This document shows positions 2,373 through 48,889 of a stretch of DNA of 64,000 nucleotides, piece by piece; position 1 is the stretch's first letter, and each line of letters begins with the position of its first letter. The position numbers and the translations under genes were made by a program. The DNA comes from Podarcis erhardii. Its lineage: Eukaryota. The notes beneath the pieces were generated by a model. That model saw only the letters and a program-made list of their open reading frames with translations. It was not told the origin of the DNA and ran no database searches. Where the stretch lies: assembly GCA_964252035.1 (NCBI GenBank), contig OZ176204.1. The stretch is one strand, 5' to 3'.

Positions 2373-2428
2373 GCTGTTGTTGTTGTTTAGTCGTTTAGTC
2401 GTGTCCGACACTTCGTGACCCCTTCGTG
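2373..2428 (-). mobile_element. Very short 3' tail of a Bov-B/RTE-type LINE or Sauria-type SINE
   Basis: (GTT)n followed by TAGTCGTTTAGTCGTGTCCGAC is the reverse complement of the typical tail. 10-bp TSD ATCTTACATT at 2363-2372 and 2429-2438. Confidence 0.7.
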
Positions 2429-5400
2429 ATCTTACATTAGCAAATTCCAAAGTTTATGCATTGTGTGAAGAACTACTTCTTATAGTCTGTCCTGAATTTT
2501 CCAACAGACAATGGCATTGGGAATAGTGAAAGGCAAATTCTCCGTTCTTCAATTTAGAATTGGCTTTTTATATATGAAAATTTCAGATGACTCTTGGGGT
2601 GAAAAATTAATGTTTGCTGAGAGTTCTCTCTAGCTTATGATGTTTGCACATGCATGTTGAGAGGCATTATTATTTTTCCTCTCAGGAATAGTAGTTTGAT
2701 TTCATCTCCCTGGCACCCATTTTACAGCACAAGCCATGATGGAAAGTTACTTAGAAAGAGATGAATTAAAGACAACAGCCCACTTTTACAAAGTTTACAA
2801 GAAATAATCAAAATAATTGATCAACCTAAATAAAGAAGATACTTGCCAAACAAAATGCTGCTTAACTAGTTTCTATGGTCACATATACTTCAAAACAGTA
2901 AACAAAGTGCTTCCTTTAGATTAAGAGGTTAATATATTAAGTTTTTTTCATGCACCTACCAAGCAGTTTGTTCAGCTTTAATGTTAATTATACATGTGCA
3001 GAATTTCATTTACTATTCCAGGTTGGAGATTATCGCCTTGAGGAAATGGCACTCAACTCATAATATATGTGAGCATTGTAGGCAGACAAATTCATATTCA
3101 AATCAAGTAATTACAGACTTCAGCAACATATTTAATTGGGGAAGCAAATCGGGATATACATGTGAACAGGATTCCTGCACTTTGTGGAGCCAACTAGAAT
3201 AATAAGGTGTGATTGATATTTTGCTCATCAAGAATTATTTTAGTGGTTGATTTCCTATGAACTATGCCACATTCTTTCACTTATTTTGAAAATATGATTT
3301 GCAAGGCATGAGTATCACAGAACAGGATGTCAGTTGAAGCTGAGCAATCACCTCTTCACAACTTGTACGGTTCAACAGTGTGAAGAAAAGAAGGTACAAT
3401 GACATGGCTTCTGAAGTTGTTCATCTAAGCAGAGCTCAAGAGATGTCAGTGGATATCTAGCTATAAACCTTCATGCCAAAGCAAGAAATCAAGAACTAAC
3501 TGAAAAAAATGAATATGGCATGCTAGACAATTTGGCTGTTTTGGGCCATGACAGCACAATGTTATGTGGCTCCAGTTCTTCCTGGACTGTTTTCAGAAGG
3601 GGATACAGGGGGACTGGTTTGTAAGGCAGCTCAGTGCTCTATGCTATTTAGTATCTTCATGAAACTGCTACTATCTCAGCATATTATTACCATGCTAATA
3701 TAACCATACTCAGGTGGACTATCTATAAAGAATTAGCTCACTTGCAACTCCTTCCTCTTTACTGGCATTAAAACACCACTTTTTAGCCAGAAATGTAAGC
3801 AAAGTTCAAACGTGGGTTATATAAAATAAAATAAACTATTAAAATGCAAGTGCAATCAAAAGCCATTTAAATGATAATGTGTGGTTTTGCTTCTGAAGTG
3901 GAATTCTCAAATTAAGTAGCAGAACCCAAATTCATTTCAAACACACCATACAGAGAACAGTGCTGTTTTGCATAGAAGATATAAGTCTATTTATATCCAC
4001 TGCTTATACTTCTGTGAACAGTGCCACTCACTTAGCCACTTTACTCCCCATAAATTGTGCCTAGCAATTATACTTGTTTGTATTCATTCCACCGTAACAC
4101 AGTAAGAACTGACAATGGATGAATGTCCACAGTTGACAAGATTAGTAATATCATTCAAAAACAGTTATTACAGGTAACTTCATCCTATAAACCAACTTGT
4201 TTCAACCCAACTAAATGTCACCCAAAACTTGGCAAGGTGGACAAATCTACCATTCTACCATAGAAAGGCCACTGGTCCTTAGTTTGAGGGCACAGATTGT
4301 GCTCCATATATTCAAACCTGGAGCCATTTTGGTACTTGGATGACCCATGAGACTACCTAAAACACATTCCCTCTACAGAGAATAACTGGAAGGACAAATC
4401 AGTGGATTTTACTCTTTAGAAATTCAACTGGATTTGACATATTTATGTTACCAAATTCTCTATCATGTCAAACACATGAAAATCATGCATAATCTGAATA
4501 GATTTTGGTACTTAATCCCGTGTGAGATAAAGGATGTATCAGATGCCAGAAAAAGCTTAATTGACAGCATGTGCGTAACATACAGTGACAAAGCTCTCAC
4601 AATTTAACAACATGCTGTCAAATGAAAGCAAATACTCTGTAAACATTTTATAGTATATGGCCTAATAAAGTTCTAGATTTGAACTCTAGTAACTCTGCAG
4701 TACCGCCTTTCATCTATTTCAAAGAAGAAATAAAAAAGATTTATAGTCAGGGTGGTTTAATTTTTAAAAAACGGAAATAGATCTTTATAGGATAAATAAA
4801 ACTTCTGACCCGCTAAGTGTGATTCTGTTTCTGTTACTCCTGGAAAAGACTTTCATATTTTACATTCTGCACCTATGCTGAAGGATAAAATATTGTATAT
4901 TTCTTCAAAGAAATGAAGTTGATTTAAAACATAATGTGTGACTGGATGCATGAATGTCTATTTTATTCCACATAAATGCTTCAGGAAGCTAGTGCATGCA
5001 ATGTGTTCCTTCCCCAAAGGACAAGGTGTTAAACAGAAATGCACCCCTGTCCTTCACATGATACATTTAGTATGCCTTCCACAATACATATGGCTATTAA
5101 TTTCCATATCAGAAGAAGTACATGCAATAATTTATGCTTGGATAACCTACAAGAAGCTTAAAAGGGAGGGAAAGCTGTTCATCTTCTATTTTGACACCTG
5201 GCTATGCTAGTGCCCAAGCCTATGCCCCATACCCTGCTCATGGAGTCCACAGAATTGAGCTCCCAGGTTTCAACCATTCCACAGCTGGTTTCACTACCTT
5301 GGCTCTGGTGAGTATTTAAGGGTATCACCTCTAGATATCTCTGCTTCCAGGAACAGGATGCAATGGTAGGCGCAACTGTCCAGTGTTATTCTGTATCAGC

Positions 5401-6465
5401 TATCATATTTTATATCAGCTACCAATTAAATCAGACTATTTGGTCACAGCTCACAGCCTACTTTATGCAGTAAATTTCCACTGTATTTCCACTGAAATCT
5501 ATGAGACTACATTATGACTGCACATGAGTAGACAGTATGTGGACTGCAGCCTTAAGATTTCTTTCTGCATTTTGTTATCTGTTGTTCTTTCCAAACTGTC
5601 CTTTAGAGTCTGATTGTAGGTTGTTTTCACTTAAATTGATTTATGAATATAAAATGTAATCAGAAAGCTATGCAGTCGTGCCATTGTAAACTAGACCTCT
5701 ATATGGACATTAAAGTCATGCCTGAGCTGCAGTATGAACATTAGAAGGCTGATCCTAAATTCAATCAAGAAACTCAAAAGCTACATACCAGCTCATGAAA
5801 AAAGACAAAGAAATTCCAAGATCCTGTAGCCTTTTCATTTCAGAAAATGCCCTGACACATTTTGAGCTTTACTGCTTTTCCTCTCTATGCTACTACAATT
5901 CATACATATTAACCAGCTCGTATTGCCTTTTTATGCAAACCCTTTTATTATAAAATCAACATGTTCACACTGTGTAATGTATTTTTATTGGATGACATGA
6001 ACAAATTGATTTTATAATAAAAGCACTTCAAAATAAAGGTATTCTTCAAACTTCCCCCATTGTCTATTTTATAGTGAATGTACAAGCCCCGTTCCCATGA
6101 TATTCATGGCTCAAATCTGCCACTTGCAGGCCTGCCTGTTCACAGCTTCTCTGCCTGTGATCCAAGCCATCTGATTTCCAGTAACTGAGGGAGTTGGAAT
6201 TCAGGCTCCTCCCATCATCAGCCAAACACCTAACCTGCTACTACCTAAGGAGGAAAATCATAATAGGTTGGGCAGTAATGGCAACAGGCAGAAACTCAGC
6301 AGGTCTTTATGGTCCTATGGCCCTTTGTCAACTATCTTACTCTTCTCCTTTCTATGTAACTTCTCCTTTTTTTCCTCTCTGCAGAATGTCCACTTTCTGT
6401 GTGCATGTCTGAAGTAACCTCCTTCTCTCTTAGCACCATCCTGCTATCTGCACCAAAGGCGCGCG

Positions 6466-6492
6466 CTCTCTCTCTCTCTCTCTCTCTCTGCA

Positions 6493-6527
<35 letters not shown>
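6466..6527. repeat. Compound microsatellite (CT)12-GCAGGT-(GA)16
   Basis: Read directly. The two arms are mutually complementary. Confidence 0.95.
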
Positions 6528-6531
<4 letters not shown>

Positions 6532-7049
6532 CTCTTGCTGCCATGTCTGGTGCTTTAAAGTGGACAATCATGTGGATCATTATTCAAAGGATTAGTGCCA
6601 GATGTTATTCTTAATACAGGATATGGAAACTGGTTGTAACTTGTCAGTGGTGAAAGCTACACTACACATGGTAAAAGGTTATTATTTCATATTTCCAGGA
6701 CTAAGCCACAGTATGGAAATATGTTCTGATGGCTTGCTGTCAAATCATTCTTTTAGTTTTACAGAAATAATACTTTTGTTACTGAAAATCTGAACTGTTA
6801 AAAAACAAAGTGCATGCAACCATAAGTAACTGTTCCTCAACACATTAAAAGCTTTAATGTATTTGTTTATTTGGTTGGTCTGGTGATCACTGTGTTTGTT
6901 TCTTCAAAAACAGCATTTGAATTCAATATTTTATGCCATATGCTTAATTTCTGACTCAGAGGTGCTGGGGTGTGGCTTTGCCCAAAAGTCATGCTCATGA
7001 TCTCCAACATACATTTAAAGCATGTCTTGAGTTACATTTTAGTAGTCTG

Positions 7050-7900
7050 TCAGGATCCTGCTGAGGGTCGTCTAGAAGTCATCTAGCCATAGGAGAGTTG
7101 AGAGGGCAAAGGTTGATGCAGGACATGATGTTTTAAGGAACAAGCCTGTTGTTTAATGTAACCTTCTCAACTCCACACCCAGCTTACACTCTGTTGCACA
7201 TCCAAGTCTTAGAGATTCATTGTCTTAGGCAGAAGAGCCACAATGGGGCCATCTATAACTGGGAACTTTAGCTTGTCCATTATCGCTTGGATCAGGATGT
7301 AGTAACTGTTTGTGCATGTCATAGCTTTGCAATTTTATAGCCATTTGGCCTTGAACCTTTTCCTAAAGATGGGGTGGGCTGATATGGATTCTCACTTCAT
7401 GTGTTCTTCTCACACCACAAAAGCACTCCTTGAGGTAAGGTAGCACAGAAATGTCTACTGGGTGATTTATTCTACACTGACATGACCTTGCACAGCAATG
7501 CTATGTCGTGCTGCTGTTGGAATGGCCAGTGCAATGAGCAATCTTCTGTATCAGACTCTTCGCCCCATTCATCCTCATTATCACTCATAGTCTGGGTGTG
7601 GTCTGTTGCCCCAGAAGAGGTATTGTCTGTTTCCTATAAGATTTGTACCATTGTTAGGTTGATGCACCTTCTGGTCTCTGCCCTAGAAACCATTTGCGCT
7701 TCAGCAGATGGATGGTTCTATTGCAGCTGTGGCTGTTGAGGAGGTGCAGACTGCAGGGCTGGAACTACAAATGAAATTAAAGCTTGAATCTCCTTGGAGG
7801 TGTCCACCTGCGAAGCTTCCTTAAGGGTTAACAGTAGTTCTCTGTGCAGCTGCAGTCGCCATGGCAAAGTTTGTGTCAGGAGCTGAACTCTCTGCTGTGG
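7050..7900 (-). mobile_element. Possible decayed DIRS-like retrotransposon ORF1 (gag-like) remnant
   Basis: Minus-strand fragments KLKFPVIDGPIVALLPKT ... ECKLGVELRRLH*TTGLFLKTSCPASTFALSTLLWLDD resemble, from memory, the P.vD.pva.L ... Lkk ... W..dl pattern of DIRS1 ORF1. Contains stops and frameshifts. Ends are uncertain. Confidence 0.4.
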
Positions 7901-10199
7901 TTAAATGTTATGATTATGGGTTCCGCACCAATATTATTTTATTTGTTCTAATTTGTTTGTTTTGTTTCCTTTTGATTTTTTTGAATAAAATTCAATTTAT
8001 TTAATTAATCCTCTCTTTTAGAAATGGCCACTAGAAGTAAACAATACACTCAAAATGACAACCAGGTGTTGTATGTTTTATGCTGCCACACTCAAATGGC
8101 TACCAGATGTTGTCCCCTGTGTCTGCTAATGGAGTCTGGAGTGGCATGATTCACAGGAACCTAATATGGAAGTTGGAGAACTGGCAGGGGGAAACGAGCC
8201 ATTAAAATATCTTGCCGTTGCCTCTACTCTGATCTGATCTGGACTATAGCCTGTGGTTGCAGTTTCTTAGGGGCTAACCACTGACATTAATGGAGGCAAG
8301 GAAAGGTCATTTAAATGCTGCATCTGATTGTGGAGATAAGAAATAAAGGCTGGGGTCAACTGATTGTTGCGCGGCAAGGGGAGTTGATCTACTAGCAAAC
8401 CCAGGTTAATCAGGTGGGCAGTCTAGGATTAAGTATTTATCATTCTACAATTAATTTTGTAATCTATCTACAATTAATTAATTAGAAAACTACAATTAAT
8501 TATTTAGCTAATTAGAAAATGCACACACCATGAAATAAAATAAAATGACAAAAGTAATAACACAGGAAGGAAAAAAGTGGTAAATTCAGCCATGTGGCAA
8601 ATTCAGCCAGTGTTTTAAAGCATCTGGCTCAGACCAGGACCCCTAGATGTTTCCACCTCCATGGGGAAAGGGAACAGTAGTGAAGCCAATGTAAGGCTAC
8701 AGGCAGCACACAAGGCAAGCAAGCACTTGGACCAATATAATTCAAAGCATTTCTATGAAGAAAGTAAAGTTCCTGTCTTGGATCCCTAGACAGTGCTAAC
8801 GCCACCCAGGTCCAAGATGATCAGTATGGGAGATAGGTGCATTACATTAAAAGCAACAAATAACTACAGTGAAGAGTCTGTACAGGGCTGGCCCAACCAT
8901 TAGGCAGAGTGAGGTGGCTGCTCCAGGCAATAGTTGCTGGGATGTGAGGAGCAGAAGAGGTGTTGAAAAACAGATCTGTGTGTGTGCACCATGGCCTGCC
9001 CCATGTCCCCTAAGCAGTGTATTAGCAGAGTTGAAGTAACATTCAACTGCTAGTCTAGTTCGATTCTGTACATGGAATAAAGCGGGGTGGGCACAATCTC
9101 ATAATTCACACTGGGCAGCCTTGGGCCTGTCCTAAGCAAAAGGAAGAAGCAGCTTCAAATTCTATAACTTATTTAAACATTATTTCCTCAAAGCTGTAAG
9201 GAAGAACAAAGAAAATATACACAAGCCAATATAAGATCCCTGTTGCAAGTCATAAAAGAACACAGTATATAAAAGGTGCTGGTAGGGAACCATTCCTACA
9301 CAGCTGCCGAGAAAATGCACCTCTAAAGGAGCTCCAGGGAATACCTGAGGGATGCAAGCTATCTTGGCATTCCAAGCAAATAAATGTTAATTGCTCATTC
9401 CCAAGTAAGACTGCTATGAGAAAATGGATGGCAAACAACAGGATTTCAGGCTCTGAGTATCAAGCCCCCACTCTCAAAAAAAATGTATGAGAAAGCTAAT
9501 ATATACAAGTGTTTCTGTTTTGTTTTAAGGAAACAGCTTTATTAGTTACATTAAGCCAACTTATTAACTGTCAAAACACTTATTTCCATCAGACTCACAG
9601 ATGCATTAATAATAAATTTCTGTCCCAGAGACTCACAAATGGTAGAATGTAAATCTGTTAAGCCATTGCCAAGAATCAAGCTAAAAAGAATTACAGAACC
9701 CCTTTTTTGCTCTACCATTTCATTGATTGGGATAGGAGAGCAGTGCGTCAAAGGGGGATGGAGTGTTTAATGGAAGGGCTTTCCGTGTGGAATGAAATGT
9801 CAAGGACATTTGCACAACTGAGGCTATAAATTCCACTTACTCTGGACAAGTGACATATGTAATTGTTCATAATGTAAAATCTAAAACATAAATGAACATT
9901 TAAACCAAGTTGAAATGCATTTTGGAGTTATTGTAGTATTTTCACTCTATTTGAAAATACATGATATGCAAAATAAAAAGTTATTAGTGAAAACTTAATA
10001 GCCAAGGGTTTATACTTGTCATACAGTCTTTGAAGCTAAATGGTGGCACCCAATATTGCTCATACTCAGAATGGACCCATTTAAATCAATAGACAAGTAA
10101 TTTAAGTGTGTCTTAGTTGATTATTATCCATTATCTGCAATCCCTTGTTTGTTCCCAAAATGAACTGTGAAATAAGATTTACTCACACATATATTGGGG

Positions 10200-22837: not shown

Positions 22838-22840
22838 AAG

Positions 22841-23166
22841 GACTTCCGGTCAGCGCCAGCGATTAATGGCGGACTTCTCCCGGAGCTCCGAGAGAAGTCT
22901 GCTCCGCGGGTTCGGGTCCTGCCGCTACGGCAAAGCGGGGACCCTCAGAAATTGCAGGCAGTGAAGCCTGCAAACAAGGAGGCTCGGCGGGTGCCTTAGG
23001 GGTCTCCCCAAACCATGAAGGAGCCTTTTTAAAGGCTTCGGAACGGCGCAGGGGGAGCGCGGCACTGAGAGCTGTCACCCAGTCTGTGGAGCGAAGCCGC
23101 ATCGCCATTATCGGAGAGCGCTGATTTCTTCCTGCAAATTGGATCCAAAAACAACTACTCGTGAGT
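22841..23166 (+). promoter_or_regulatory. CpG-rich L1 5' end: probable internal Pol II promoter and structured 5' leader
   Basis: ETS-like ACTTCCGG at the start, YY1-like AATGGCGG at 22865-22872, GTGAGT donor-like motif at 23161. Homologous to 44183-44515. Promoter role is inferred by analogy to mammalian L1. Confidence 0.65.
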
Positions 23167-23244
23167 AGGACTAAAAAGCGTAATTGGACTTAAGAATTTT
23201 ACAAATTCCGTCACGGGAAAAGGTACAAAAAGGAAGTCTGCCTT

Positions 23245-26272: not shown

Positions 26273-26419
26273 ACAAAAAGGAAGTCTGCCTTTTCGATCT
26301 GTAGACACAGCAAAGCAAAGAGACTGCTAAACTGTAACCTTTGAAGACTGCTTTTGGTTAAAACAAAATAAAAAAATTCCTTCCAGTAGCACCTTAAAGA
26401 CCAACTGAGTTAGTTCTAG

Positions 26420-26457
26420 GTATGAGCTTTCGTGTGCATGCACACTTCTTCAGATAC
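26420..26457 (-). ncRNA. Mirror copy of the hammerhead ribozyme in the inverted Penelope arm
   Basis: Exact reverse complement of 27611-27648. Sense to the ATRNL1 pre-mRNA. Confidence 0.78.
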
Positions 26458-26969
26458 ACTGAAACAGAAGTCACCGGACCTTTCTATATAGTGAGAAGGT
26501 GGGGAGGGGTATTACTCAGAAGGGTGGTGGGAATGGGTGATTGGCAGATAGCTGCGATGAGCCTGTTGACGACTCTTAACGACTGCAATAGGTCTAACAG
26601 GAAAAAGCAAGGGGTGGGAAGGTGAAAAATGGCTTTGTCATGTATAATGAGATAAGAATCCAATGTCTTTGTTCAAACCAGGTCTCTCCATAGTTTTAAG
26701 TTTGGTGATAAGTTGCAATTCAGCAGCTTCTCTTTCCAGTCTATTTCTGAAATTCCTTTGTAATAGAACAGCTACTTTGAGATCTTGTATAGAATGTCCT
26801 GGGAGATTGAAGTGTTCTCCTACTGGTTTTTCTGTCTTGTGGTTCCTGATGTCGGATTTATGTCCGTTTATTCTTTGGCGTAAGGTCTGGCCTGTTTGTC
26901 CAATATAGAGAGCTGAAGGACACTGTTGGCATTTTATGGCATACACAATGTTAGACGATGAGCAATTAA

Positions 26970-27430
26970 CCAAAAGACCTAACACGGACACTGGCACCAG
27001 AGCCTGCAATAAACCCAGATGCCAACTTTGCTGCCACATACACCCGGACAACACCATTACTGGCCCCAACAACATCACACATACCATCTCGGGACTATTT
27101 AATTGCTCATCGTCTAACATTGTGTATGCCATAAAATGCCAACAGTGTCCTTCAGCTCTCTATATTGGACAAACAGGCCAGACCTTACGCCAAAGAATAA
27201 ACGGACATAAATCCGACATCAGGAACCACAAGACAGAAAAACCAGTAGGAGAACACTTCAATCTCCCAGGACATTCTATACAAGATCTCAAAGTAGCTGT
27301 TCTATTACAAAGGAATTTCAGAAATAGACTGGAAAGAGAAGCTGCTGAATTGCAACTTATCACCAAACTTAAAACTATGGAGAGACCTGGTTTGAACAAA
27401 GACATTGGATTCTTATCTCATTATACATGA
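26970..27430 (+). CDS. C-terminal GIY-YIG endonuclease of the Penelope ORF (truncated)
   Basis: CNKPRCQLCCH linker motif, then NIVYAIKC...LYIGQTGQTLRQRINGH...REAAE...GLN. Confidence 0.88.
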
Positions 27431-27610
27431 CAAAGCCATTTTTCACCTTCCCACCCCTTGCTTTTTCCTGTTAGACCTATTGCAGTCGTTAAGAGTCGTC
27501 AACAGGCTCATCGCAGCTATCTGCCAATCACCCATTCCCACCACCCTTCTGAGTAATACCCCTCCCCACCTTCTCACTATATAGAAAGGTCCGGTGACTT
27601 CTGTTTCAGT

Positions 27611-27648
27611 GTATCTGAAGAAGTGTGCATGCACACGAAAGCTCATAC
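27611..27648 (+). ncRNA. Minimal type I hammerhead ribozyme in the Penelope pLTR
   Basis: GTAT-CTGAAGA-A-GTGTGCATGCACAC-GAAA-GCTC-ATAC: stem I GUAU/AUAC, CUGANGA and GAAA core, palindromic stem II and palindromic AGCU stem III. Cleavage predicted after C27644. Confidence 0.8.
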
Positions 27649-28247
27649 CTAGAACTAACTCAGTTGGTCTTTAAGGTGCTACTGGAAGGAATTTTTTTAT
27701 TTTGTTTTGACCATGGCAGACCAACACGGCTACCTATCTGTAACTGCTTTTGGTTAAGTGTAACCCATTGATAAAAAGCAAGAACTAACCCCCCACCTAG
27801 CCAGCAGGAGCGGTGGGGAGAATTTCTGTTGAAAGTTTATTTCCTGCATGAAGGGAGAAGGGAAATTATATCCATTGTCTTTGCATCCTGAGGGAGGACT
27901 GCCTTGAAAGAGATAAAGACCTCTTAATTTTGGAATAACTTTAGGAACTTTACTGAACTTTACTGAAAGTTACTGTATCTGAGACTGTTTTTTAAAACTG
28001 TTACATATCTGCAACAAAAAGCTGGAACTAAGGCTTTCCCCTTTCTTTTAAGAAGAACTGGGGGGGGGCTACAAAAAGTATCCTTATTCTAAAAGACTCT
28101 GTAACTAAGCTGAGAACTTCCCCCCCTAGAGGAGACTTTGTTACTTTTGAAACAACTAAACTACTAGAAGCCCAGCCAGTGGAAATTTCCTATTGAAAAC
28201 AAACTGCTAAGTGTGGGACTGACCTTGACTGGGCATGATAGTGGCAT

Positions 28248-28822
28248 GGCAAATGGTAAAGAAAAGATAGAATCACTTCAGGAGAAAAGCCTCAGATCCG
28301 GTAAACATTACAGAAGGGCCTCATTGACAGGAGCAGCTGCAGCCTCACAAAAAAAATCTAAAGCTATGTCATCAGAAGATGTTTTGGCCAAAGCACTGGA
28401 AAAAATAAATCAATCTTTGGAACTTCTCACGAAACAAGGGAATGATACAAGTAAACAAACACTGGAAATTGAAGATTCTTTTGTGGAGATTTTTAAAGAT
28501 ATTCCTAAGCCTATTCTAGATGTGAGAGGTGACTACAGAGAGTTAGTCATATTATTGAAGAAAAGCAGAATCTTCTTTAGATGGGAATTTCCTCAAGGCC
28601 TGTCTTTTAAATACAGAGGGGGGAAAAATAAGAATTAAGACACCGAGCGACAAAGACAAATTTTTGAGAGAACACGAAGAAGATCTTGTGAAGGAGGCGG
28701 AAGCTGGAGAGGAACAAACACCATCGGGAAAGGGAATCTTGGACTTAGCAAACTTATCGTTTGGATTGCAGCTACCAACAGAAGAGGAACAACAACTAGG
28801 AGCTGTAGGAGGAGTAAGTAAA
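28248..28822 (+). pseudogene. Outer-L1 ORF1 remnant: N-terminus joined directly to the C-terminal domain
   Basis: IFKDIPKPILDVRGDYRELVILLKKSRIFFRWEFPQGLSFKYRG fits the L1 ORF1p CTD pattern. Frameshift near 28625. Acidic tail ends just before the ORF2 ATG. Confidence 0.7.
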
Positions 28823-28832
28823 TAACCCCATC

Positions 28833-31800
28833 ATGGCTTTGCGACTTCTGAGCTGGAACTGTAATGGTTTGAACATCCCTCGGAAGAGGAAGAATGTATT
28901 TCATATATTAAACAAGCAACAATTGGACTTAATTTGTTTACAAGAGACACGTGATGAGAACACATAGAAGATTACTTACTAACAAAAAATTAGGACAAGA
29001 ATTTGTCTCATCTGATAGAGGGGAAAAAAGAGGAGTTGTTATATATGCAAAAGACAAATTGATGCCGAAATTGAAATTTAAAGATGAACAAGGAAGATAT
29101 CTGGCAATTGAAATTCAAATCCAAGGACAGAAATTTTTGATTGTAGGAGTCTATGCACCAAATGAAAGTAAATCTGAATTCTTTAAGAAGTTGCATGAGA
29201 TCTTGTTGGACTTTTTAGAATGGAATGTAATTTTGATGGGAGATATGAATGGAGTTGTTTCCACAAACATGGATAAAGCGCAAAGACAAGTAATATTGAA
29301 GGATGGAAGACTACCAAAAACTTTTTTTGAATTGACTGACAATATGGATTTGGTTGACATTTGGAGAACAAAGAATCCCCTTGAAAGAGAGGGAACCTTC
29401 TTTTCTGAAGCCAAAATGACCTGGACTAGAATTGACCAAATATGGGCTACTAGAGGATTGGCACCAAAGATAAAAAAAGTGGAAATCTGCCCAAAAACAT
29501 GCTCTGACCATAACGCCGTGAAGATGGAAATGAACCAAACAACAGCTGGCACCTTCAGATGGAGAATGAATGACACCCTATTCAGAGACAAAGAATTCTG
29601 TAAAAAGGCCCCAAAAACATTGAGAGACTATTTTGAGATCAACCTGAAGACAAACGTTGAAAAAAGAGTAATCTGGGACGCAAGTAAAGCTGTTATGAGA
29701 GGGTTCTTGATACAACAAAATGCAATAAAAAAGAGAAGCCAGAATGCGAAAAAGGATAAGATTTTGGAAAAGATAAAAGAAGGAGAAAAGAAATTAAGAT
29801 CAAAACCAAAGTCTCAGGACATCTTGAGAGAAATTAAATTATATCAGGTCCAGTATATGGAATTGATGAACCAAGAAATAGAATGGAAAATTAAACAAAT
29901 GAGACAGAAGACCTTTGAATCCGCCGATAAATGTGGTAAATTTCTGGCTTGGCAATTGAAGAAGAGACAAAAACTGAATACAGTGACAAATTTGGAAGTG
30001 GATGGAAAGAACATTTATAACCCAACTGAAATCAGAAGCTGTTTCCAGAGATATTTTAAACAATTGTATGCACAAGGGCGACAAAAAGACTCTGATATAG
30101 AACAATTTTTGGAGAAAAATGGATTGAAGGAAATCTCAAGTGAGGGTAAAGTACTTTTGAATCAGAAAATAACAGAACAAGAAATTAGAGAGTGCCATTC
30201 AAAGTATGCAACTGGGCAAATCTCCGGGGCCTGATGGACTGACTTCCAAATATTATAAAGCTTTAAAGGAATGGATACTACAACCTTTGAAGGAAGTCTG
30301 TAACGAGATTCTTGAGGGGGAAAAGGCACCTGATACGTGGAAAGAGGCCTACATCACGCTTATACCGAAGACAGAGACTGAGAAGACCCAACTTAAGAAC
30401 TACCGCCCAATTTCTTTACTAAATGTGGATTACAAAATCTTTGCTGACATCTTAGCTAGAAGATTGAAAAAGGTATTGATGGGGGAGATTCATAGTGACC
30501 AAGCAGGCTTTCTCCCGAGAAGACATTTATCAGATAATGTAAGGAATATAATAGACATTTTGGAGATGTTAGAAGTTAATATAAACCTAACTCCTAATTC
30601 CTTTTTGTTAGGAATTACAGGAAGCGAGATCAATAGAAGTGATTATAAACTTTTTCAATATGCAGTGACTGCGGCAAGAATTTTAATGGCTCAAAAATGG
30701 AAACAAGAAGATTTACCAACATTGGAAGAATGGAGACGGAAATTGATGGACTTTGCTGAATTAGACAAACTGACAGGAAAAATCAGATACCAAAAGGATC
30801 ACAAGTTCATACAGGACTGGAGAAAGTTTACGATTTATCTGGAAAATATATGTGATGAACAGACAACGCTAGTCGGTTTTAAAGAGGCTTTGTGAGGAGA
30901 AAGGGTGTTGTAAGAGGGGAAAGAGCTGTAAAGATTTACTAACTAGCAATACAATTATAAAGGAAATGTGAATTAAATTTTAAAATCATGAGGATTGTGG
31001 AGGGAGCTGGGGGAAGTCTAAAAGAATTTATGTATTATATTGGAAAGTATGTGTTATTTAAATTTGTAAAAGAAAAACTTTTCTAAAAAATTAATAAAAT
31101 AAAAAAAAAGAAGTTAATATAAACACAAAAGCTGTTTTGATATTTGTGGACGCGGAGAAAGCCTTTGACAATATTTCTTGGACCTTTATGAAGAAGAATC
31201 TCCATGGTATGGGGGTAGGCCAAGGGTTTCAAAACGGTATAGGCGCAATATATTCTGAACAAAAGGCTAAACTTATAGTGAACAATGTGATTACGGAAGA
31301 ACTTAAAATTGAGAAAGGGACACGTCAGGGGTGCCCAATCTCCCCGTTACTCTTTATTTCGGTACTGGAGGTTTTGTTAAACATGATAAGAAAGGACCAG
31401 TTGGTTAAAGGGGTCCAGGTCGGAGCGAAACAATATAAATTGAGAGCTTTTGCAGATGATTTGGTACTTACATTACAAGAGCCAGAATCTAGTACTAAAA
31501 GAGTTTTGGAACTGATGCAAGAATTTGGTCAAATGGCAGGGTTTAAATTGAATAAGTTAAAAACTAAGGTATTAGAGAAAAACTTAACAGATATTGAGAA
31601 AGAGAAGTTTCAGAATGAGACAGGTTTAACTGTGGTTAAGAGTGTAAAATATTTGGGGATCAACATGACAGCTAAAAATATGAACTTATTTAAAGATAAC
31701 TATGAGAAATGTTGGAAACAAGTGAAAAAAGACTTAGAAATCGGGTCAAACCTTCAAGTTTGAAAGCTTCCTTTCCTTGTCTGGTCGAATAGCAGTTATA

Positions 31801-33120: not shown

Positions 33121-33411
33121 AAAGATATGGGTTTTAAAAATTAGTGGTTTGCAGGGGCATTGATTAAGGAAAAAGAATAGAATTAATAAAAACTATGGGA
33201 AATGTGGGAATGGATTTGCTGATAAAATAAATGAGATTAGAATACAGAAGGGGGAGGTGTGAGGAGGTCAGTGAAATTAGGTTTAGAAAATATGGTTTGA
33301 ACTTATACTTGTTTTTGATTTGTTTGTTTGTTCGTTTATGTTTTTATTGTCCTTTGTGTTTATATGTGTTTATTCAAAACTTTAATAAATATCATTTAAA
33401 AAAAAAAAGAA

Positions 33412-42870: not shown

Positions 42871-44182
42871 TGCATAGTGCATCACATAGGCCCCTTATAT
42901 TTATAAGTTTGGTTCATTTACAGCTATCAAGGCAGAAGGCAACTTGAGGCTTTTCCCTAGCCTGTGTGTGTATTCCAGACTTAGCCATACTTGGTAGCTA
43001 TGACTAACTTAAGTCTCATTAATTTCAATGAGCCTACTGGAAGCATGAGAAAGTTTATATGCAATCTATCCATCTATCTATCTTGATATAGATATATTTG
43101 TGGAACTGCTTACTACCAATTTGTATGTTGGGAGGCGAATGAATGCATATGATTCTGTTTCCAAGTAGAAGATTGATATCTTTTGATACTTGCTTTAAGA
43201 GCCCAACAGGTTGCCAGCACCGGAGCATGCCATTTTACAAATCGTAACAATTTCTCCAAACTAACACAACTCTCTCACATCCCTTTTACATTATATGTTT
43301 GTGGCAAATCAGCCACAAGACTTTAAACTTTCCCTTCATCTGCAGATGGTCATTCAATCACTTTCATGAGTGAGCCTCCCTTTTTGGAAGAGCTAGGAGC
43401 AGCCAGAGGTCCTATGTTCTGTGTAATATGGCCGCAATTATTATTCCTTTTTTTAAAAAAAAAATTACTACTCTCTTGGCTATGCAGACAGACTTCCATC
43501 ATTTGAAAACAAAAACCTCTGTTCACTCTGAACACATTATGATCATATTAAATAGGGCTGAGATTTCCAATGTCACCTAAGGAAATTTGAAGCACTGTTC
43601 CTATTAAAGTTAATGGACAGAGAATATCCAAATCCCTTTGAAAACTGCAGCCAATAGATATGTTACCAACTGCAAAACTTGACAGCTGATTAAGAGAAAT
43701 CTATCTTTCATAATGATGCAGTGGATATAGTACAAGTGGAGCCTTATTAGAAACTTAACCAAATTATTCCAGAAATTCACGTTCTTCTCTGCATGATATA
43801 ATAGGAGGGGAAACAAGCAAGAGCTATTTGATTTACTTCATGATATACTGATTTTGAAGCTTTAGCTCACTTCAGTGTGATAATAAATTGCATTAAGCCC
43901 CTGTGTGCTGTTCAATAGCTTGCTACAACAGTATTAATGAAATTAGAAGGTCGTTCAATCTAATTATGTTTGTTTTCAGTTCAAATTAGAAAGATGTCCG
44001 TTAAATATTCAATTTACACAATATCTGTGCAATTTTATATCAGAATGATTAAATCAGAATGAGGAAGTGGGACTCAAAATTGATTTAACCACTGGAACAT
44101 TTTACAGACAATCAACATACACAATAGGAGAGGTACATAAGCCCTTAAGGAAATGGGGAATGCATACAAAATCCCCCACTCA

Positions 44183-46033
44183 AGGACTTCCGGGTTAGCG
44201 CGAACGGCTAATGGCGGATTCCCTCCGAGCTCCGGAGGGAATCGGCTCTACTGAGGACGGGTCTTGCCGTGCCGGCGACACGGGGACCCTCAGAAACCGC
44301 AGGCGCGGAAGCCTGCGGACTTGGTGACTCGGTGGGCACCTTAAGCGCCCTCCCCGACCCACGAAGAGCCTTTTTAAAGGCTGCGGAGAGGGTACGGAGA
44401 GTGGCGTGGTGCTGAGAGTAGACCGCTACCTCAGTAGAGCGAAGCCGCAAGCCATGGCCGGAGAGCGCTGACTTTCTTCCCAAAATTTGGACTGGATAAC
44501 AAAGGACCCGTGAGTAGTGGAATTTGGACTTTAAAAATTTTATCCTGTGAATTCGGCACGATCGGGGGATGTGTTAAAGGGAAGTCCGCACCCCCTCTAC
44601 TTATAGACGTTTCAAAGCAAGGAACGGAGATTTAAGGCGGAATGAATACTGTTTTGATGATTTAAAAGTTTCTCACAAATTTGATAGAACAAGATTTTTG
44701 TGCTGGAGAGAAAGGGAATTTGGAATTTTGTGTGTATCCCCCCCAAAAAACCCGGGAGTGTCCTATTTGGGTCCCGGAGGAAGAAGTGAAAGGAGTTTGA
44801 CAGCTGTCAAAGAAGCTGTCAAACGGGCGGACAAAGTAAAGAATTTTGCTATTCAATAACTCTTGGAATTAAAGCTGATACATTTGGACTGAGGCGATTG
44901 GAAACAAAGTATTGATAATAACAAAGTAACAGATTATTGGAAAAGGACTACTAAATAACTGAAAGCCCCCTAGGGGGAATTAGTGACATTACAATGGCTG
45001 CAGAGGGAAAATTACTGGCGGAGATAGAAAAAATGTTCTTTCTCGTGGGAATCCTGCAGGAGCAGAGTATGGCTCTGAGTAAAGTTTTTATGACCTTGAA
45101 TCCTGAAACAAACAACTCTGCTGAATGCACAAAGGAGATGCATGATAAAAATTCTGCAGCTGAGCAGGAAGAGATGCCTTTGGAATTGACAGAGAAAAAA
45201 GAAGGAGTTCAGACACTACAAGTGGAAAATATCAACCAGGAATCTGCAGCGTTAGAGTATGAGCAAGAAGACCTCTGGATTACAGACCTGCGAAAGATGA
45301 GAAAGAAGAAGAGAGAAGCCCCTGGAGTACTTGGAATATTAAAACTAGAAGGAACAAAGCAATATGATTGGGACTTTTCTCTTGAGTATGGAAAACTAGA
45401 TGGTCTTTCGCAGCAAACACTCTTCAACATTCTGAATGAAAGAAAATATGATCTGACTCTGACTGAACTCCTTCGGGGTCTTAGGACCATCAAAGAGGAC
45501 TACCAATATAGTTGGCAGAGAGGGACTGACAGAGAATCAGACGCCTCGGACGTGAGGAATCCGGGCTAGAAATATTTTTTGTTTGTTTTCTGGACATTTG
45601 TCTAGGAAGGGACAGAAACCGGGGCAGGGGGGGGAGAGAATAGAATTATAAAATGTTATGTTTTGTTTTACTTGGTCAATGTGACCTATAATTAATATAA
45701 TAAAGGGAAAATTTGTGAAGGGGAAGTTAGATCGACCTTAAAAAAAAAGAAATTAATGATTATAAGAGAATTGGATAGTTGAATATAGATAAACAAAAGA
45801 ATTTAATTTTTAAAAGCAATGTGAATATCTTTAAGAGGTTAGGTAAGAACTTGCTGAATTAATTTTGGAATTGGGATGTAAGAGGAGGGGGTGGGGGGAA
45901 GTCAATGAAAGTGGGTAAAGAAACTTAGGGTATGGAATTGTATTTGTGTGTTTGTTTGTCTTTGTCTTTGTGTGTGTGTCTGTTGTTATAAAATGTAAAA
46001 ACCCAATAAAAATTATTTTAAAAAAAAAAAAAA
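44183..46033 (+). mobile_element. 1.85-kb non-autonomous L1-like retroposon (L1-type 5' end, one short ORF, L1-type 3' end, poly(A))
   Basis: 17-bp TSD ACAAAATCCCCCACTCA at 44166-44182 and 46034-46050. 5' ~330 nt homologous to 22838-23166. No EN or RT sequence. Confidence 0.88.
44994..45569 (+). CDS. 191-aa ORF of the short L1-like element, function unknown
   Basis: Uninterrupted ATG-to-TAG ORF in good Kozak context (acaATGG), sitting in the ORF1 position. Acidic and helical-looking. Weak ungapped similarity of residues 1-30 to the outer-L1 ORF1 N-terminus. Confidence 0.6.
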   Translation: MAAEGKLLAEIEKMFFLVGILQEQSMALSKVFMTLNPETNNSAECTKEMHDKNSAAEQEEMPLELTEKKEGVQTLQVENINQESAALEYEQEDLWITDLRKMRKKKREAPGVLGILKLEGTKQYDWDFSLEYGKLDGLSQQTLFNILNERKYDLTLTELLRGLRTIKEDYQYSWQRGTDRESDASDVRNPG

Positions 46034-48889
46034 ACAAAATCCCCCACTCACATTAACTTGCCCATTCACTTAGCATACAGAACTTCTTTTTGCACTGGAG
46101 TAGAGAGGGAAAGTCAAGAACTTTTGGTGCACAACATAAGGACACACAGGGCTTTAAGATAATGCACTTACCTAGCGCTGCACCCATAATGGATGCTCCT
46201 GTTCAGGGTTTCAACTATGCCTCCTTCATTAAACTATAAATTAAAAGGTAAAGGGGGGCTCAAAGAGGCAAATTATTTTGCTCCCTCCTCTCCTTTTATT
46301 TTCCAACTGATACTTAACATATTCAGTTCCCTTTAGAATGTTTTTGGAAGGGATTCTGAGCTTTTAAAGCATTTTGTAATTTTATATAGCTGGAGATTAA
46401 TCCAAGCATGTAGATACCTCCCTCCTAATTCACAATGGCCCTGTTTTGACTCCAATCCTGTTGACATTCAGGATTGAAAAATTGTTATCTTTAAAAAAAA
46501 GGCATCTGGTAAACAGATGTATACACTCGTTCCCACAATGGCCCTCAATTTCTGAAACCCAGGAAGGGTGGGGAAGTACTAACTGAGGGGAGGGGACAAC
46601 ACACAGTGTGAATACATCCCACCAAGCACTGCCCACCAGTGTAAGATGGAAACATGACAGTTGAAAGTGCTTGTGTGTGGATGAAGAAAAAGCACACAAA
46701 ATTGCACATGAAAAATTCTATCTGTGTTACCCATGTGCACATTAATACTTTGGTGTATGTATAGCCATAGGCAAACACCATCCTTTGCTATTCCTGGTGA
46801 ACAGTATTGCAGCCTTAGTTACTATTTTTAAACTCCTTAGTTTCTTGCTGCCTGATTTGTATTTAGCAACATATGTATTATACAGGAGTATAATACAGGA
46901 GTGACAAATGCCCTTTAAACACTGTTCTCTGATTGTGGTCTCTAGTGTCAGTTCTTCTATGCACTCTGGTGATCAAAGGCCCAATCAATTTGCCAACATG
47001 TGTTCTGAGCCTTTTAACTCAGCAGCAGCACAGCCTCCCATTGTCCCTGATTATGGTTTCCCCCTCCTGCTTCCAGTCCAGTGACATATGCTTCTATTTG
47101 TGTAAACAAGGACTAAGATTCTGTGATTTATCCTTGAGAGATAATATCATGGAGGAACACATATCTCTGTCTCTTTCAAAGAATGGGTCCCAGAGCTGTT
47201 AGACCTCTTTCTCTTTCTTACATAACTTCAGAAATTTATGATTTAATCTATTTCATGGATGACATCTGAACTTCAGACTTGATTGGACTTAGTCTAGTCC
47301 AAGTATCTTCAAACTTTTCACACCCAGGGTCCTCTTTTAACCCAAACATGTATTTGGGGACCCATTTTTAACATTTTACTATATATTTGCATGGTGGCAG
47401 TTCTCTTGCTGCGACCCACTAGCAGGCCCTGACCCAGCAGTTGATACAGCAGTTGTATATAGAAGGATCACCATAAGGTTTAATAAACCTCTGCTTTCTC
47501 TTTCCTGTGCATGGTCTGTGCATGCATGCATGCCCCAAATCATATCATTATGGGGAATGGGAATCCTGTTCACCCATCTTCCATATTTCCATATAGTTGT
47601 TCTCCTCCACAATTCTCTCCAGTAATGCGAGTTTGTAGCTAAGTGCAAATGCTCTCTACTATGTCCTGCAACCACACATGGTTGGAGGACTCTTAGTGGA
47701 CTGGATTACACCCAGTCTAATTTAGTACTATATGGTACCATCCATATAATGTGATTTTTACCCTTTGGAAATATATAGCAAAGTTAAATGAAAGTCACTT
47801 GAAGACTCAATGGAATTAACATTTGTGAAACATTGCTTACAACCTTTTTATACTGCACTAGTTTCTAATTGCCTGATTTCTTCCCTTGTCTTGTAATCAA
47901 TGTTAACTAGAAAAGTTAATACGTTTTGCAAAAGAAAATTCATTAGCATTTAATTTAGATCTCTTCTTCTGTCCCCTATATAGCAATCTTTACAAAGCTT
48001 TAAAAGTCTACAAGGTTAAAACAACAAAAAGTTTTGCAAACGGTTAGACAGTGTTATAAAACATTCTCTCACAAACTCTTTCAGCAACATTCTGTAGTTC
48101 AATGCCCCCACCCCTGGACCAAGAGCTTTCTAGACTAGCATAAAAAAAGTGGCTATGCATTATATATATATGTGCAAGGATATATAGCTATATTTTATAC
48201 TTTCATTTACAGTTCTCCCCAAATATTGTGGCCTTTACTTAGAAAATTAGTTGTTCATATGTTCCACTGAAATAAACAGGATACTTTTCAATGAGACTTC
48301 AGTAAAACTAACTTTCTCTGGGTTTGAGTATCTGTTTTATGTTACATAGTAAGCATTCATAATCTAGGCATTCTAATATCTATAAAGCTGCCCAATAGAC
48401 AATATTATATATAGACAATTGCCTGAATTTTTCAGTGTTATTACTTTAGTTCTCCAACATGCCTCTACTTATAAAATTAAGACCAATTGCAGTAACAGAG
48501 AGGGCCCACTCCCGACCTCAGCCCACCTGAGCTGCGCACAAGCAGGTGGAGACTATGCCTGTATGTAACCTGTTTCTGCTCCTCCTGCTTCAATCGTCTG
48601 CTGGTTCTAGGAGACAGTGGAGCATGAAAGGTGGGGGCAGGAGGTCGTGGTAAGCTCTTGACTCTACACCAGCCTGACCTATCTCTCCCTCCTCCTGCAC
48701 CTATTCTTCACTCGCCATTCCTGCAGCTTCTCCTGCCTCTGACTCTTGTCTCCTGGCTGTTACAGGCTCTCCCAGGTCACTGATCCCTTCTTCCAAGTCA
48801 GATGCCAACCCCCTTCTCCCAGTGCCCATTCATCCGTATCCAGTCACCACTCCTCAGCGTCCAGTCAGTCCCTGACACTGCAGAGTGCC

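Follow-up and report, generated by a model that had tools for sequence, protein, structure and literature searches.

A recently inserted, high-copy non-autonomous retroposon of the lizard Podarcis erhardii with L1-type ends and a conserved open reading frame

Positions 44183-46033 of the window, by which we mean the whole stretch of 64,000 nucleotides of Podarcis erhardii DNA analysed here, hold a recently inserted, full-length copy of a high-copy, non-autonomous poly(A) retroposon family. Its features are listed in Table 1. The best explanation for the element as a whole, and one that we consider probable, is that it is a HAL1-like retroposon mobilised by L1 and carrying a selected protein of its own.

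Table 1. Features of the element and its borders (window coordinates).
Feature	Position	Strand	Evidence
Complete non-autonomous poly(A) retroposon, 1851 bp	44183..46033	+	TSD and A14 as borders; no RT/EN; summed contig depth thousands of times that of the flanks
17-bp target-site duplication (TSD), 5' copy	44166..44182	+	Twin at 46034-46050; single copy at the empty site of organism B
L1-type 5' leader, CpG-rich, strongly folded	44183..44560	+	83% column identity with outer L1 22839-23210; CpG; fold
Family-specific leader part, two hairpins (~44752-44777, ~44795-44824)	44561..44993	+	Fold z = -2.7
191-aa ORF, orphan, mostly acidic protein family	44994..45569	+	TAG stop 45567-45569; 15 full-length relatives
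Conserved N-terminal helix, residues 1-35	44994..45098	+	Invariant M1, G19, L21, Q22; AF2 helix 2-35
Basic patch LRKMRKKKRE, residues 99-108	45288..45317	+	Weakly kept in relatives
Conserved C-terminal motif, residues 156-191, ending ASDVRNPG-stop	45459..45566	+	14-member alignment
Trailer of unknown origin, AATAAA 45699-45704, A9 45740-45748	45570..45748	+	No similarity to L1 3'UTRs
Complete L1-type 3'UTR, AATAAA 46005-46010	45749..46019	+	End-to-end alignment with outer L1 33121-33398
Poly(A) tail, A14	46020..46033	+	Sequence
17-bp target-site duplication, 3' copy	46034..46050	+	Identical to the 5' 17-mer

The element is bounded by a 17-mer, ACAAAATCCCCCACTCA, that occurs exactly twice in the 64-kb window. 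It starts with the bases AGGACTTCCGG and ends in AATAAA (46005) and A14. The implied bottom-strand nick, TTTTGT/AT, is of the T-rich/A kind and L1-endonuclease-like. The corresponding empty site is found in a second organism (organism B), where a contig of 2,720 nt fuses window position 44179 straight to 46048. The 1868 bases that this contig skips are accounted for by the element (1851 bp) and a single copy of the 17-bp target. Since the site is empty in organism B, whose flanks at this locus are ~2.5% divergent, the insertion is younger than the split between the source organism and organism B. The first-pass annotation had described an intact TPRT insertion that lacks EN and RT, and both points are borne out: the duplication is perfect, the A14 tail is in place and the empty site exists, while no Pfam domain was found in any plus-frame piece of the element and a tblastx comparison with the L1 ORF2 copies within the window gave no match. 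A SINE with a Pol III head derived from tRNA, 7SL or 5S RNA was considered and rejected, as a tRNA search found none and Rfam at E values up to 1 returned nothing except a chance lncRNA match.

Abundance was gauged by placing contigs (not reads) from public runs on window positions 43700-46500, with run X1 representing the source organism (organism A). In the source organism, the single-copy flanks have a depth of 70-98, against a summed depth of 1.9e5 to 7.2e5 in every bin of the element and of 2.8e5 to 4.4e5 in the bins of the ORF. This amounts to an element-to-flank ratio of ~2,400-8,000, which is a ratio of summed contig depth and not a copy number, and which indicates that the family is very abundant and young. 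A total of 5,776 contig pieces of the source organism match, and 2,057 of these are at least 99% identical. The possibility that the copy is a one-off deletion derivative of an L1, which the first-pass annotation had named as one of the cases that would overturn its reading, is ruled out by the depth and by the protein relatives described below, both of which make the family multi-copy.

The family is unevenly distributed among the organisms compared. Organism C has pieces of the ORF that are 96-99% identical. The leader is abundant in organism B, where depth is also high at 44734-44827, while the body of the ORF (45110-45579) lies between about flank level and ~10 times that level. Because the ORF body reaches thousands of times the flanks in the source organism but stays this low in organism B, despite a flank difference of ~2.5%, the depths suggest a very recent burst that is specific to the source lineage and took place after its split from organism B. 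Outside the first 450 bp, the hairpin stretch at 44752-44824 and the start-codon region are the most abundant parts in organism B, and these two parts may be common to other families.

The window also contains a full-length but interrupted L1 (22839-33410), referred to here as the outer L1, which served as the reference for the L1-type parts of the element. Its leader starts at 22839 and, after nested insertions, resumes and is followed by ORF1 (ATG at 28366), ORF2 and a 3'UTR that extends to ~33410. ORF2 carries EN, RT and a CX2CX7HX4C motif. Nested in the leader are a 5'-truncated L1 (23245-26272), which lies between 20-nt direct repeats at 23225 and 26273, and a Penelope-like element (~26361-27741) with two inverted GIY-YIG ORFs and 15-nt repeats at 26346 and 27742. 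The ORF1 that starts at 28366 carries an internal deletion, and there is another L1 piece at around 30206-31140. For comparison with the element, the pieces of the outer L1 were each taken singly, as they stand in the window, rather than being joined, repaired or replaced by a consensus.

The first ~370 bp of the element align with the first ~370 bp of the outer L1 at 83% column identity, starting with the identical bases AGGACTTCCGG. The segment 44183-44560 is folded more strongly than its shuffles (z = -6.1), and the structured L1-type 5' leader of the first-pass annotation is thus upheld by both the alignment and the fold. The observed-to-expected CpG ratio is 0.97 in the first 318 bp, compared to 0.05-0.19 in the flanks, which fits a young copy. 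The leader probably contains the promoter and the transcription start. The octamer ACTTCCGG at 44186-44193, the reverse complement of the ETS-type core CCGGAAGT, sits at the putative transcription start of the element and of the outer L1 alike. An upstream ATG within the motif TAATGGCGGA is found at 44211 and at 22866, near +29 in both leaders; the one in the element starts a 38-codon uORF in the same frame as the main ORF. In all, the 811-nt leader holds five short upstream ORFs ahead of the main one. A consensus-like 5' splice site, GTGAGTAG, occurs only twice in the 64 kb, at 44510-44517 and 23161-23168, and thus at matching positions (~+325) in both L1-type leaders. This motif may be a conserved splice donor or a part of the folded leader.

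The second part of the leader (44561-44993) resembles none of the other leader pieces of the outer L1. The hairpins within 44752-44824 consist of a CCCGGGA...TCCCGG pairing and the palindrome-rich GACAGCTGTCAAAGAAGCTGTCAAAC (fold z = -2.7).

The sole long ORF of the element starts at an ATG in a strong context (ACAATGG) and belongs to a protein family of its own. A word search found seven relatives of 188-214 aa with 38-49% identity over their full length, and a profile search of 1.84 billion representative proteins added eight further relatives of 129-215 aa, together with one spurious repeat protein. The family comprises 15 full-length relatives of 171-215 aa and one broken copy of 129 aa (P0013). 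The protein database holds called ORFs only, in which intact copies are over-represented, although the broken P0013 was still entered. No ORF1p, ORF2p or host gene came up in the profile search of the 1.84 billion representatives, and no longer or host-gene relative was found in these or in 5.8 billion clusters. A processed retrogene is ruled out by this lack of a longer or host relative and by the high copy number. A word search with the 40 N-terminal residues alone returned family members only. Pfam gave no match for the 191-aa protein nor for any of 14 members (0/14), a profile search of the PDB yielded chance matches only (E of 0.38 and above), a search of the ESM Atlas for relatives produced no usable match, and in a metagenome scan for relatives none of 67 pattern matches was confirmed.

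The conservation of the family is concentrated at its two ends. In an alignment of 14 members, residues 1-24 and the final ~35 are well conserved and the middle is free; M1, G19, L21, Q22, A184, S185, D186, P190 and G191 are invariant, and the stop codon directly follows the PG in every one of the aligned members. The members differ by many indels, all of them in frame, and the two ends always share one frame. This pattern of conserved ends and in-frame indels argues for selection on the protein, with the reservation that the databases are biased towards open frames. Twelve of the 14 members are acidic, with a pI of 4.5-6.4. The only confident element in the AF2 predictions is a helix at residues 2-35 (pLDDT 77-88), while the remainder is modelled as low-confidence helix or disorder; mean pLDDT is 44 and 47 in the models, which contain no strands, at this low confidence. 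The invariant Gly19 in the region of the N-terminal helix is unusual for a coiled coil, and a complex prediction with three copies of residues 1-60 scored 0.07, which speaks neither for nor against a trimer. The C-terminal motif was also compared to the 2A “stop-carry on” peptide, D(V/I)ExNPG followed by P, and this candidate was rejected: the family ends in DVRNPG, DVIDPG or DLRSPG and then the stop, which is one residue short and lacks the E and the P of 2A.

From its sequence, the 191-aa protein is not a recognisable member of the ORF1p family, since it lacks an RRM and a CTD, carries the wrong charge and shows no link to ORF1p in sequence searches. The first-pass annotation had reached the same view, and the wider searches agree with it: Transposase_22, RRM and CTD of Pfam are matched by none of the 14 members, and the profile search brought up no ORF1p. 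The family profile detects no L1 ORF1 or ORF2 and scores the L1 ORF1 fragment of the window at E = 7, and a word search with the outer L1 ORF1 fragment as the query found nothing.

There is, nevertheless, a resemblance at the N-terminus. The first-pass annotation had aligned residues 1-30 with the start of the outer L1 ORF1, and the 9 identities in 30 that it counted are there. The BLOSUM62 score of this pairing is 29 (shuffle p = 3e-4), a score reached by a fraction of 8e-5 of 25,259 control 30-mers of the window. At the nucleotide level, 45 of the 105 positions of the first 35 codons are identical in register with the L1 ORF1 start (codon-shuffle p = 0.002), which none of 1,639 in-frame ORF2 windows equalled. 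Close family members have start-anchored scores of 15-22, against a null mean of -26, but distant members are not raised. The resemblance is thus above chance under four nulls, but the family profile misses L1 ORF1. On balance, we lean towards the leader and the first 30-35 codons having come from L1 with its ORF1, and the rest having been replaced or having changed beyond recognition.

A closer relationship would make the element a true half-L1, or HAL1 proper, whose ORF encodes a reduced ORF1p that has kept the role of coating and chaperoning the RNA of the element. The ORF does take the place of ORF1 behind an L1 leader, there is in-register similarity to the start of L1 ORF1 over the first 30-35 codons, and the one confident structural element is an N-terminal helix. 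However, the domains of ORF1p were matched by none of the 14 members, no ORF1p emerged from 1.84 billion proteins in the profile search or from the PDB, 12 of the 14 members are acidic, the predicted model is all-helical without strands, and the E value of 7 for the ORF1 fragment of the window gives no link either. We therefore regard a surviving ORF1p as unlikely.

The 3' end of the element is again clearly of L1 type. Its final 285 bp can be aligned over their whole length with the 3'UTR of the outer L1, and 45749-46019 is collinear with 33121-33398 at z = 10; for comparison, z is 5.5 for two true L1 3'UTRs from the window. The L1-type 3'UTR motifs read by the first-pass annotation are indeed present. 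The same annotation had pointed to an internal A9 preceded by an AATAAA as the hint of a fused 3' end, and both motifs are there (45740-45748 and 45699). The hint holds in so far as a complete L1-type 3'UTR begins right after the A9, but the 179 bp before it match nothing: this trailer has no similarity to L1 3'UTRs, to the 3' ends of ORF2 or to the part of the 3'UTR that follows it. Two L1-based sources for this region were tried and rejected. As a second, shortened L1 3'UTR, the trailer (45570-45748) scores z below 1, and an origin of the protein C-terminus from the tip of ORF2 fails because neither protein nor DNA similarity to the three ORF2 ends in the window was found. The length of the A-run varies between copies. 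It could be the remnant of a poly(A) tail or the A-rich start of the L1 3'UTR, the latter because the sequence at the ORF2 stop of the outer L1 is TAAAAAGA.

These features raise the alternative that the ORF is a captured cassette, in which a polyadenylated host or foreign mRNA, complete with ORF, AATAAA and the A9 remnant, came to lie between the leader and the 3'UTR of an L1 through template switching or nested insertion, and the chimera then became a master copy. The position of the AATAAA and the A9 just ahead of a complete L1 3'UTR speaks for such a fusion, and no L1 sequence of the window is matched by the middle of the ORF or by the 179-bp trailer. However, the 1.84 billion representatives and 5.8 billion clusters contain no longer or host-gene relative from which a cassette might have come, the A-run may be no more than the A-rich beginning of the 3'UTR, as TAAAAAGA in the outer L1 illustrates, and the AATAAA lies 36 nt ahead of the A-run, which is rather far. 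Capture is thus an improbable origin, to much the same degree as a shrunken ORF1p. The origin that we favour, by a modest degree, is that the element is an L1 derivative in which the leader, the opening ~30-35 codons of ORF1 and the 3'UTR were retained, whereas everything else in the two ORFs was lost or replaced.

Mobilisation of the element very likely begins with transcription from the L1-type leader, after which its polyadenylated RNA would be copied in trans by the ORF2p of autonomous L1 elements into a T-rich/A nick. Cell assays have shown that Pol II-made passengers of L1 require ORF1p in addition to ORF2p (PMC2666806), and a Pol II-type parasite would accordingly have reason to bring a factor of its own. 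The acidity of the protein and the sharp conservation at both of its ends lead us to favour, as the weakest link of this account, an adaptor to L1 proteins or host factors over an RNA chaperone. Tentatively, and with rather less confidence than for the origin, we propose that the acidic helical protein acts as an adaptor and not as an ORF1p-like chaperone: it may stay with its own RNA and recruit the basic L1 proteins, docking through the N-terminal helix, which is perhaps derived from ORF1, and through the invariant ASD...PG end.

A bolder version of the adaptor concerns the C-terminus. The invariant ASD-x-x-x-PG-stop might be a C-end signal that slows the release of the chain at the stop and so ties the protein to its own mRNA, or else a glycine-end dock for a cullin-type ligase; combined with an ORF1-like helix that captures L1 proteins, it would give the element a “cis preference” of its own. 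We offer this as a speculation with little likelihood. If true, it would be a novel means by which a protein-coding passenger hijacks a LINE.

The protein might instead act against something, by poisoning the trimers of L1 ORF1p, with which the first-pass annotation had proposed interference or co-assembly, or by disabling a host restriction factor. The possible ORF1-like helix, the acidic character that could bind basic partners and the invariant C-terminal end are all compatible with an antagonist. However, a parasite that depends on L1 gains nothing from blocking L1, and we find this role quite unlikely.

Whichever the activity, selection at the level of the element is likely to maintain the ORF, in that copies that make the protein would spread better. 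Of the 12 best-supported indels that distinguish copies within the source organism, none falls inside the ORF, which makes up 31% of the element. The ORF variants among those listed comprise seven non-synonymous and three synonymous changes (n = 10), a ratio of ~0.6 from too few variants to be informative. That the ORF is a chance or decaying frame, in a long non-coding passenger like SVA of which the RNA ends alone matter, is very improbable: 15 relatives, which are 25-50% identical, have retained a full-length frame that runs from one and the same Met to one and the same PG-stop in spite of numerous indels, and the probability of a stop-free frame of 200 codons arising by chance is near 7e-5.

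Several known elements invite comparison. L1 ORF1p itself (Transposase_22) has the same position in its element, an N-terminal helix and the weak in-register likeness over the first 30-35 codons; the lizard protein differs from it in having no RRM or CTD, in being acidic rather than basic and half as long, and in the absence of any link by sequence search.

HeT-A, a non-LTR retroposon of Drosophila telomeres, encodes only a Gag-like protein, obtains its RT from another element and needs its own protein for targeting. It is unlike the lizard element in that it belongs to the Jockey clade, is specific to telomeres and has a recognisable Gag with zinc knuckles.

The SVA and LAVA elements of hominoids are likewise Pol II-type, polyadenylated, composite elements of 1-3 kb that are mobilised by L1, flanked by TSDs and amplified in lineage-specific bursts (PMC3287187, PMC5174737). 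However, they are non-coding and lack an L1 leader, whereas the lizard element has a conserved ORF and both L1 UTRs.

The closest parallel is HAL1 of mammals, which encodes ORF1p alone and arose several times (Kojima 2018, PMC5753468). Like HAL1, the lizard element is a non-autonomous, multi-copy L1 derivative with L1 ends and one ORF, which has lost ORF2 and is very likely mobilised in trans. It differs in that the ORF of HAL1 is a recognisable ORF1p, while the lizard ORF is acidic, has no RRM or CTD and is ORF1-like over at most 30-35 codons, in the extra 179-bp trailer ahead of the L1 3'UTR and in its squamate host. Three of four HAL1 features were found, namely L1-derived ends, the absence of ORF2 and multi-copy spread by TPRT; the fourth, the coding of ORF1p, was not.

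We found no HAL1-like element described from reptiles in the literature. Given its abundance, the family is probably listed under one name or another in automated repeat libraries. The passengers of L1 known to us so far are either non-coding (SINEs, SVA and retrocopies) or encode a plain ORF1p (HAL1). Here, a family in one lizard lineage appears to outnumber single-copy DNA by thousands, and it encodes a small acidic protein that is nameless to domain libraries and sequence searches alike. If this protein helps the element to use the enzymes of L1, the family would be a natural system for finding out what a Pol II-made RNA needs, beyond its poly(A), to be copied by ORF2p. L1 in lizards is usually described as low-copy, and yet it would appear to be able to support a very successful parasite.
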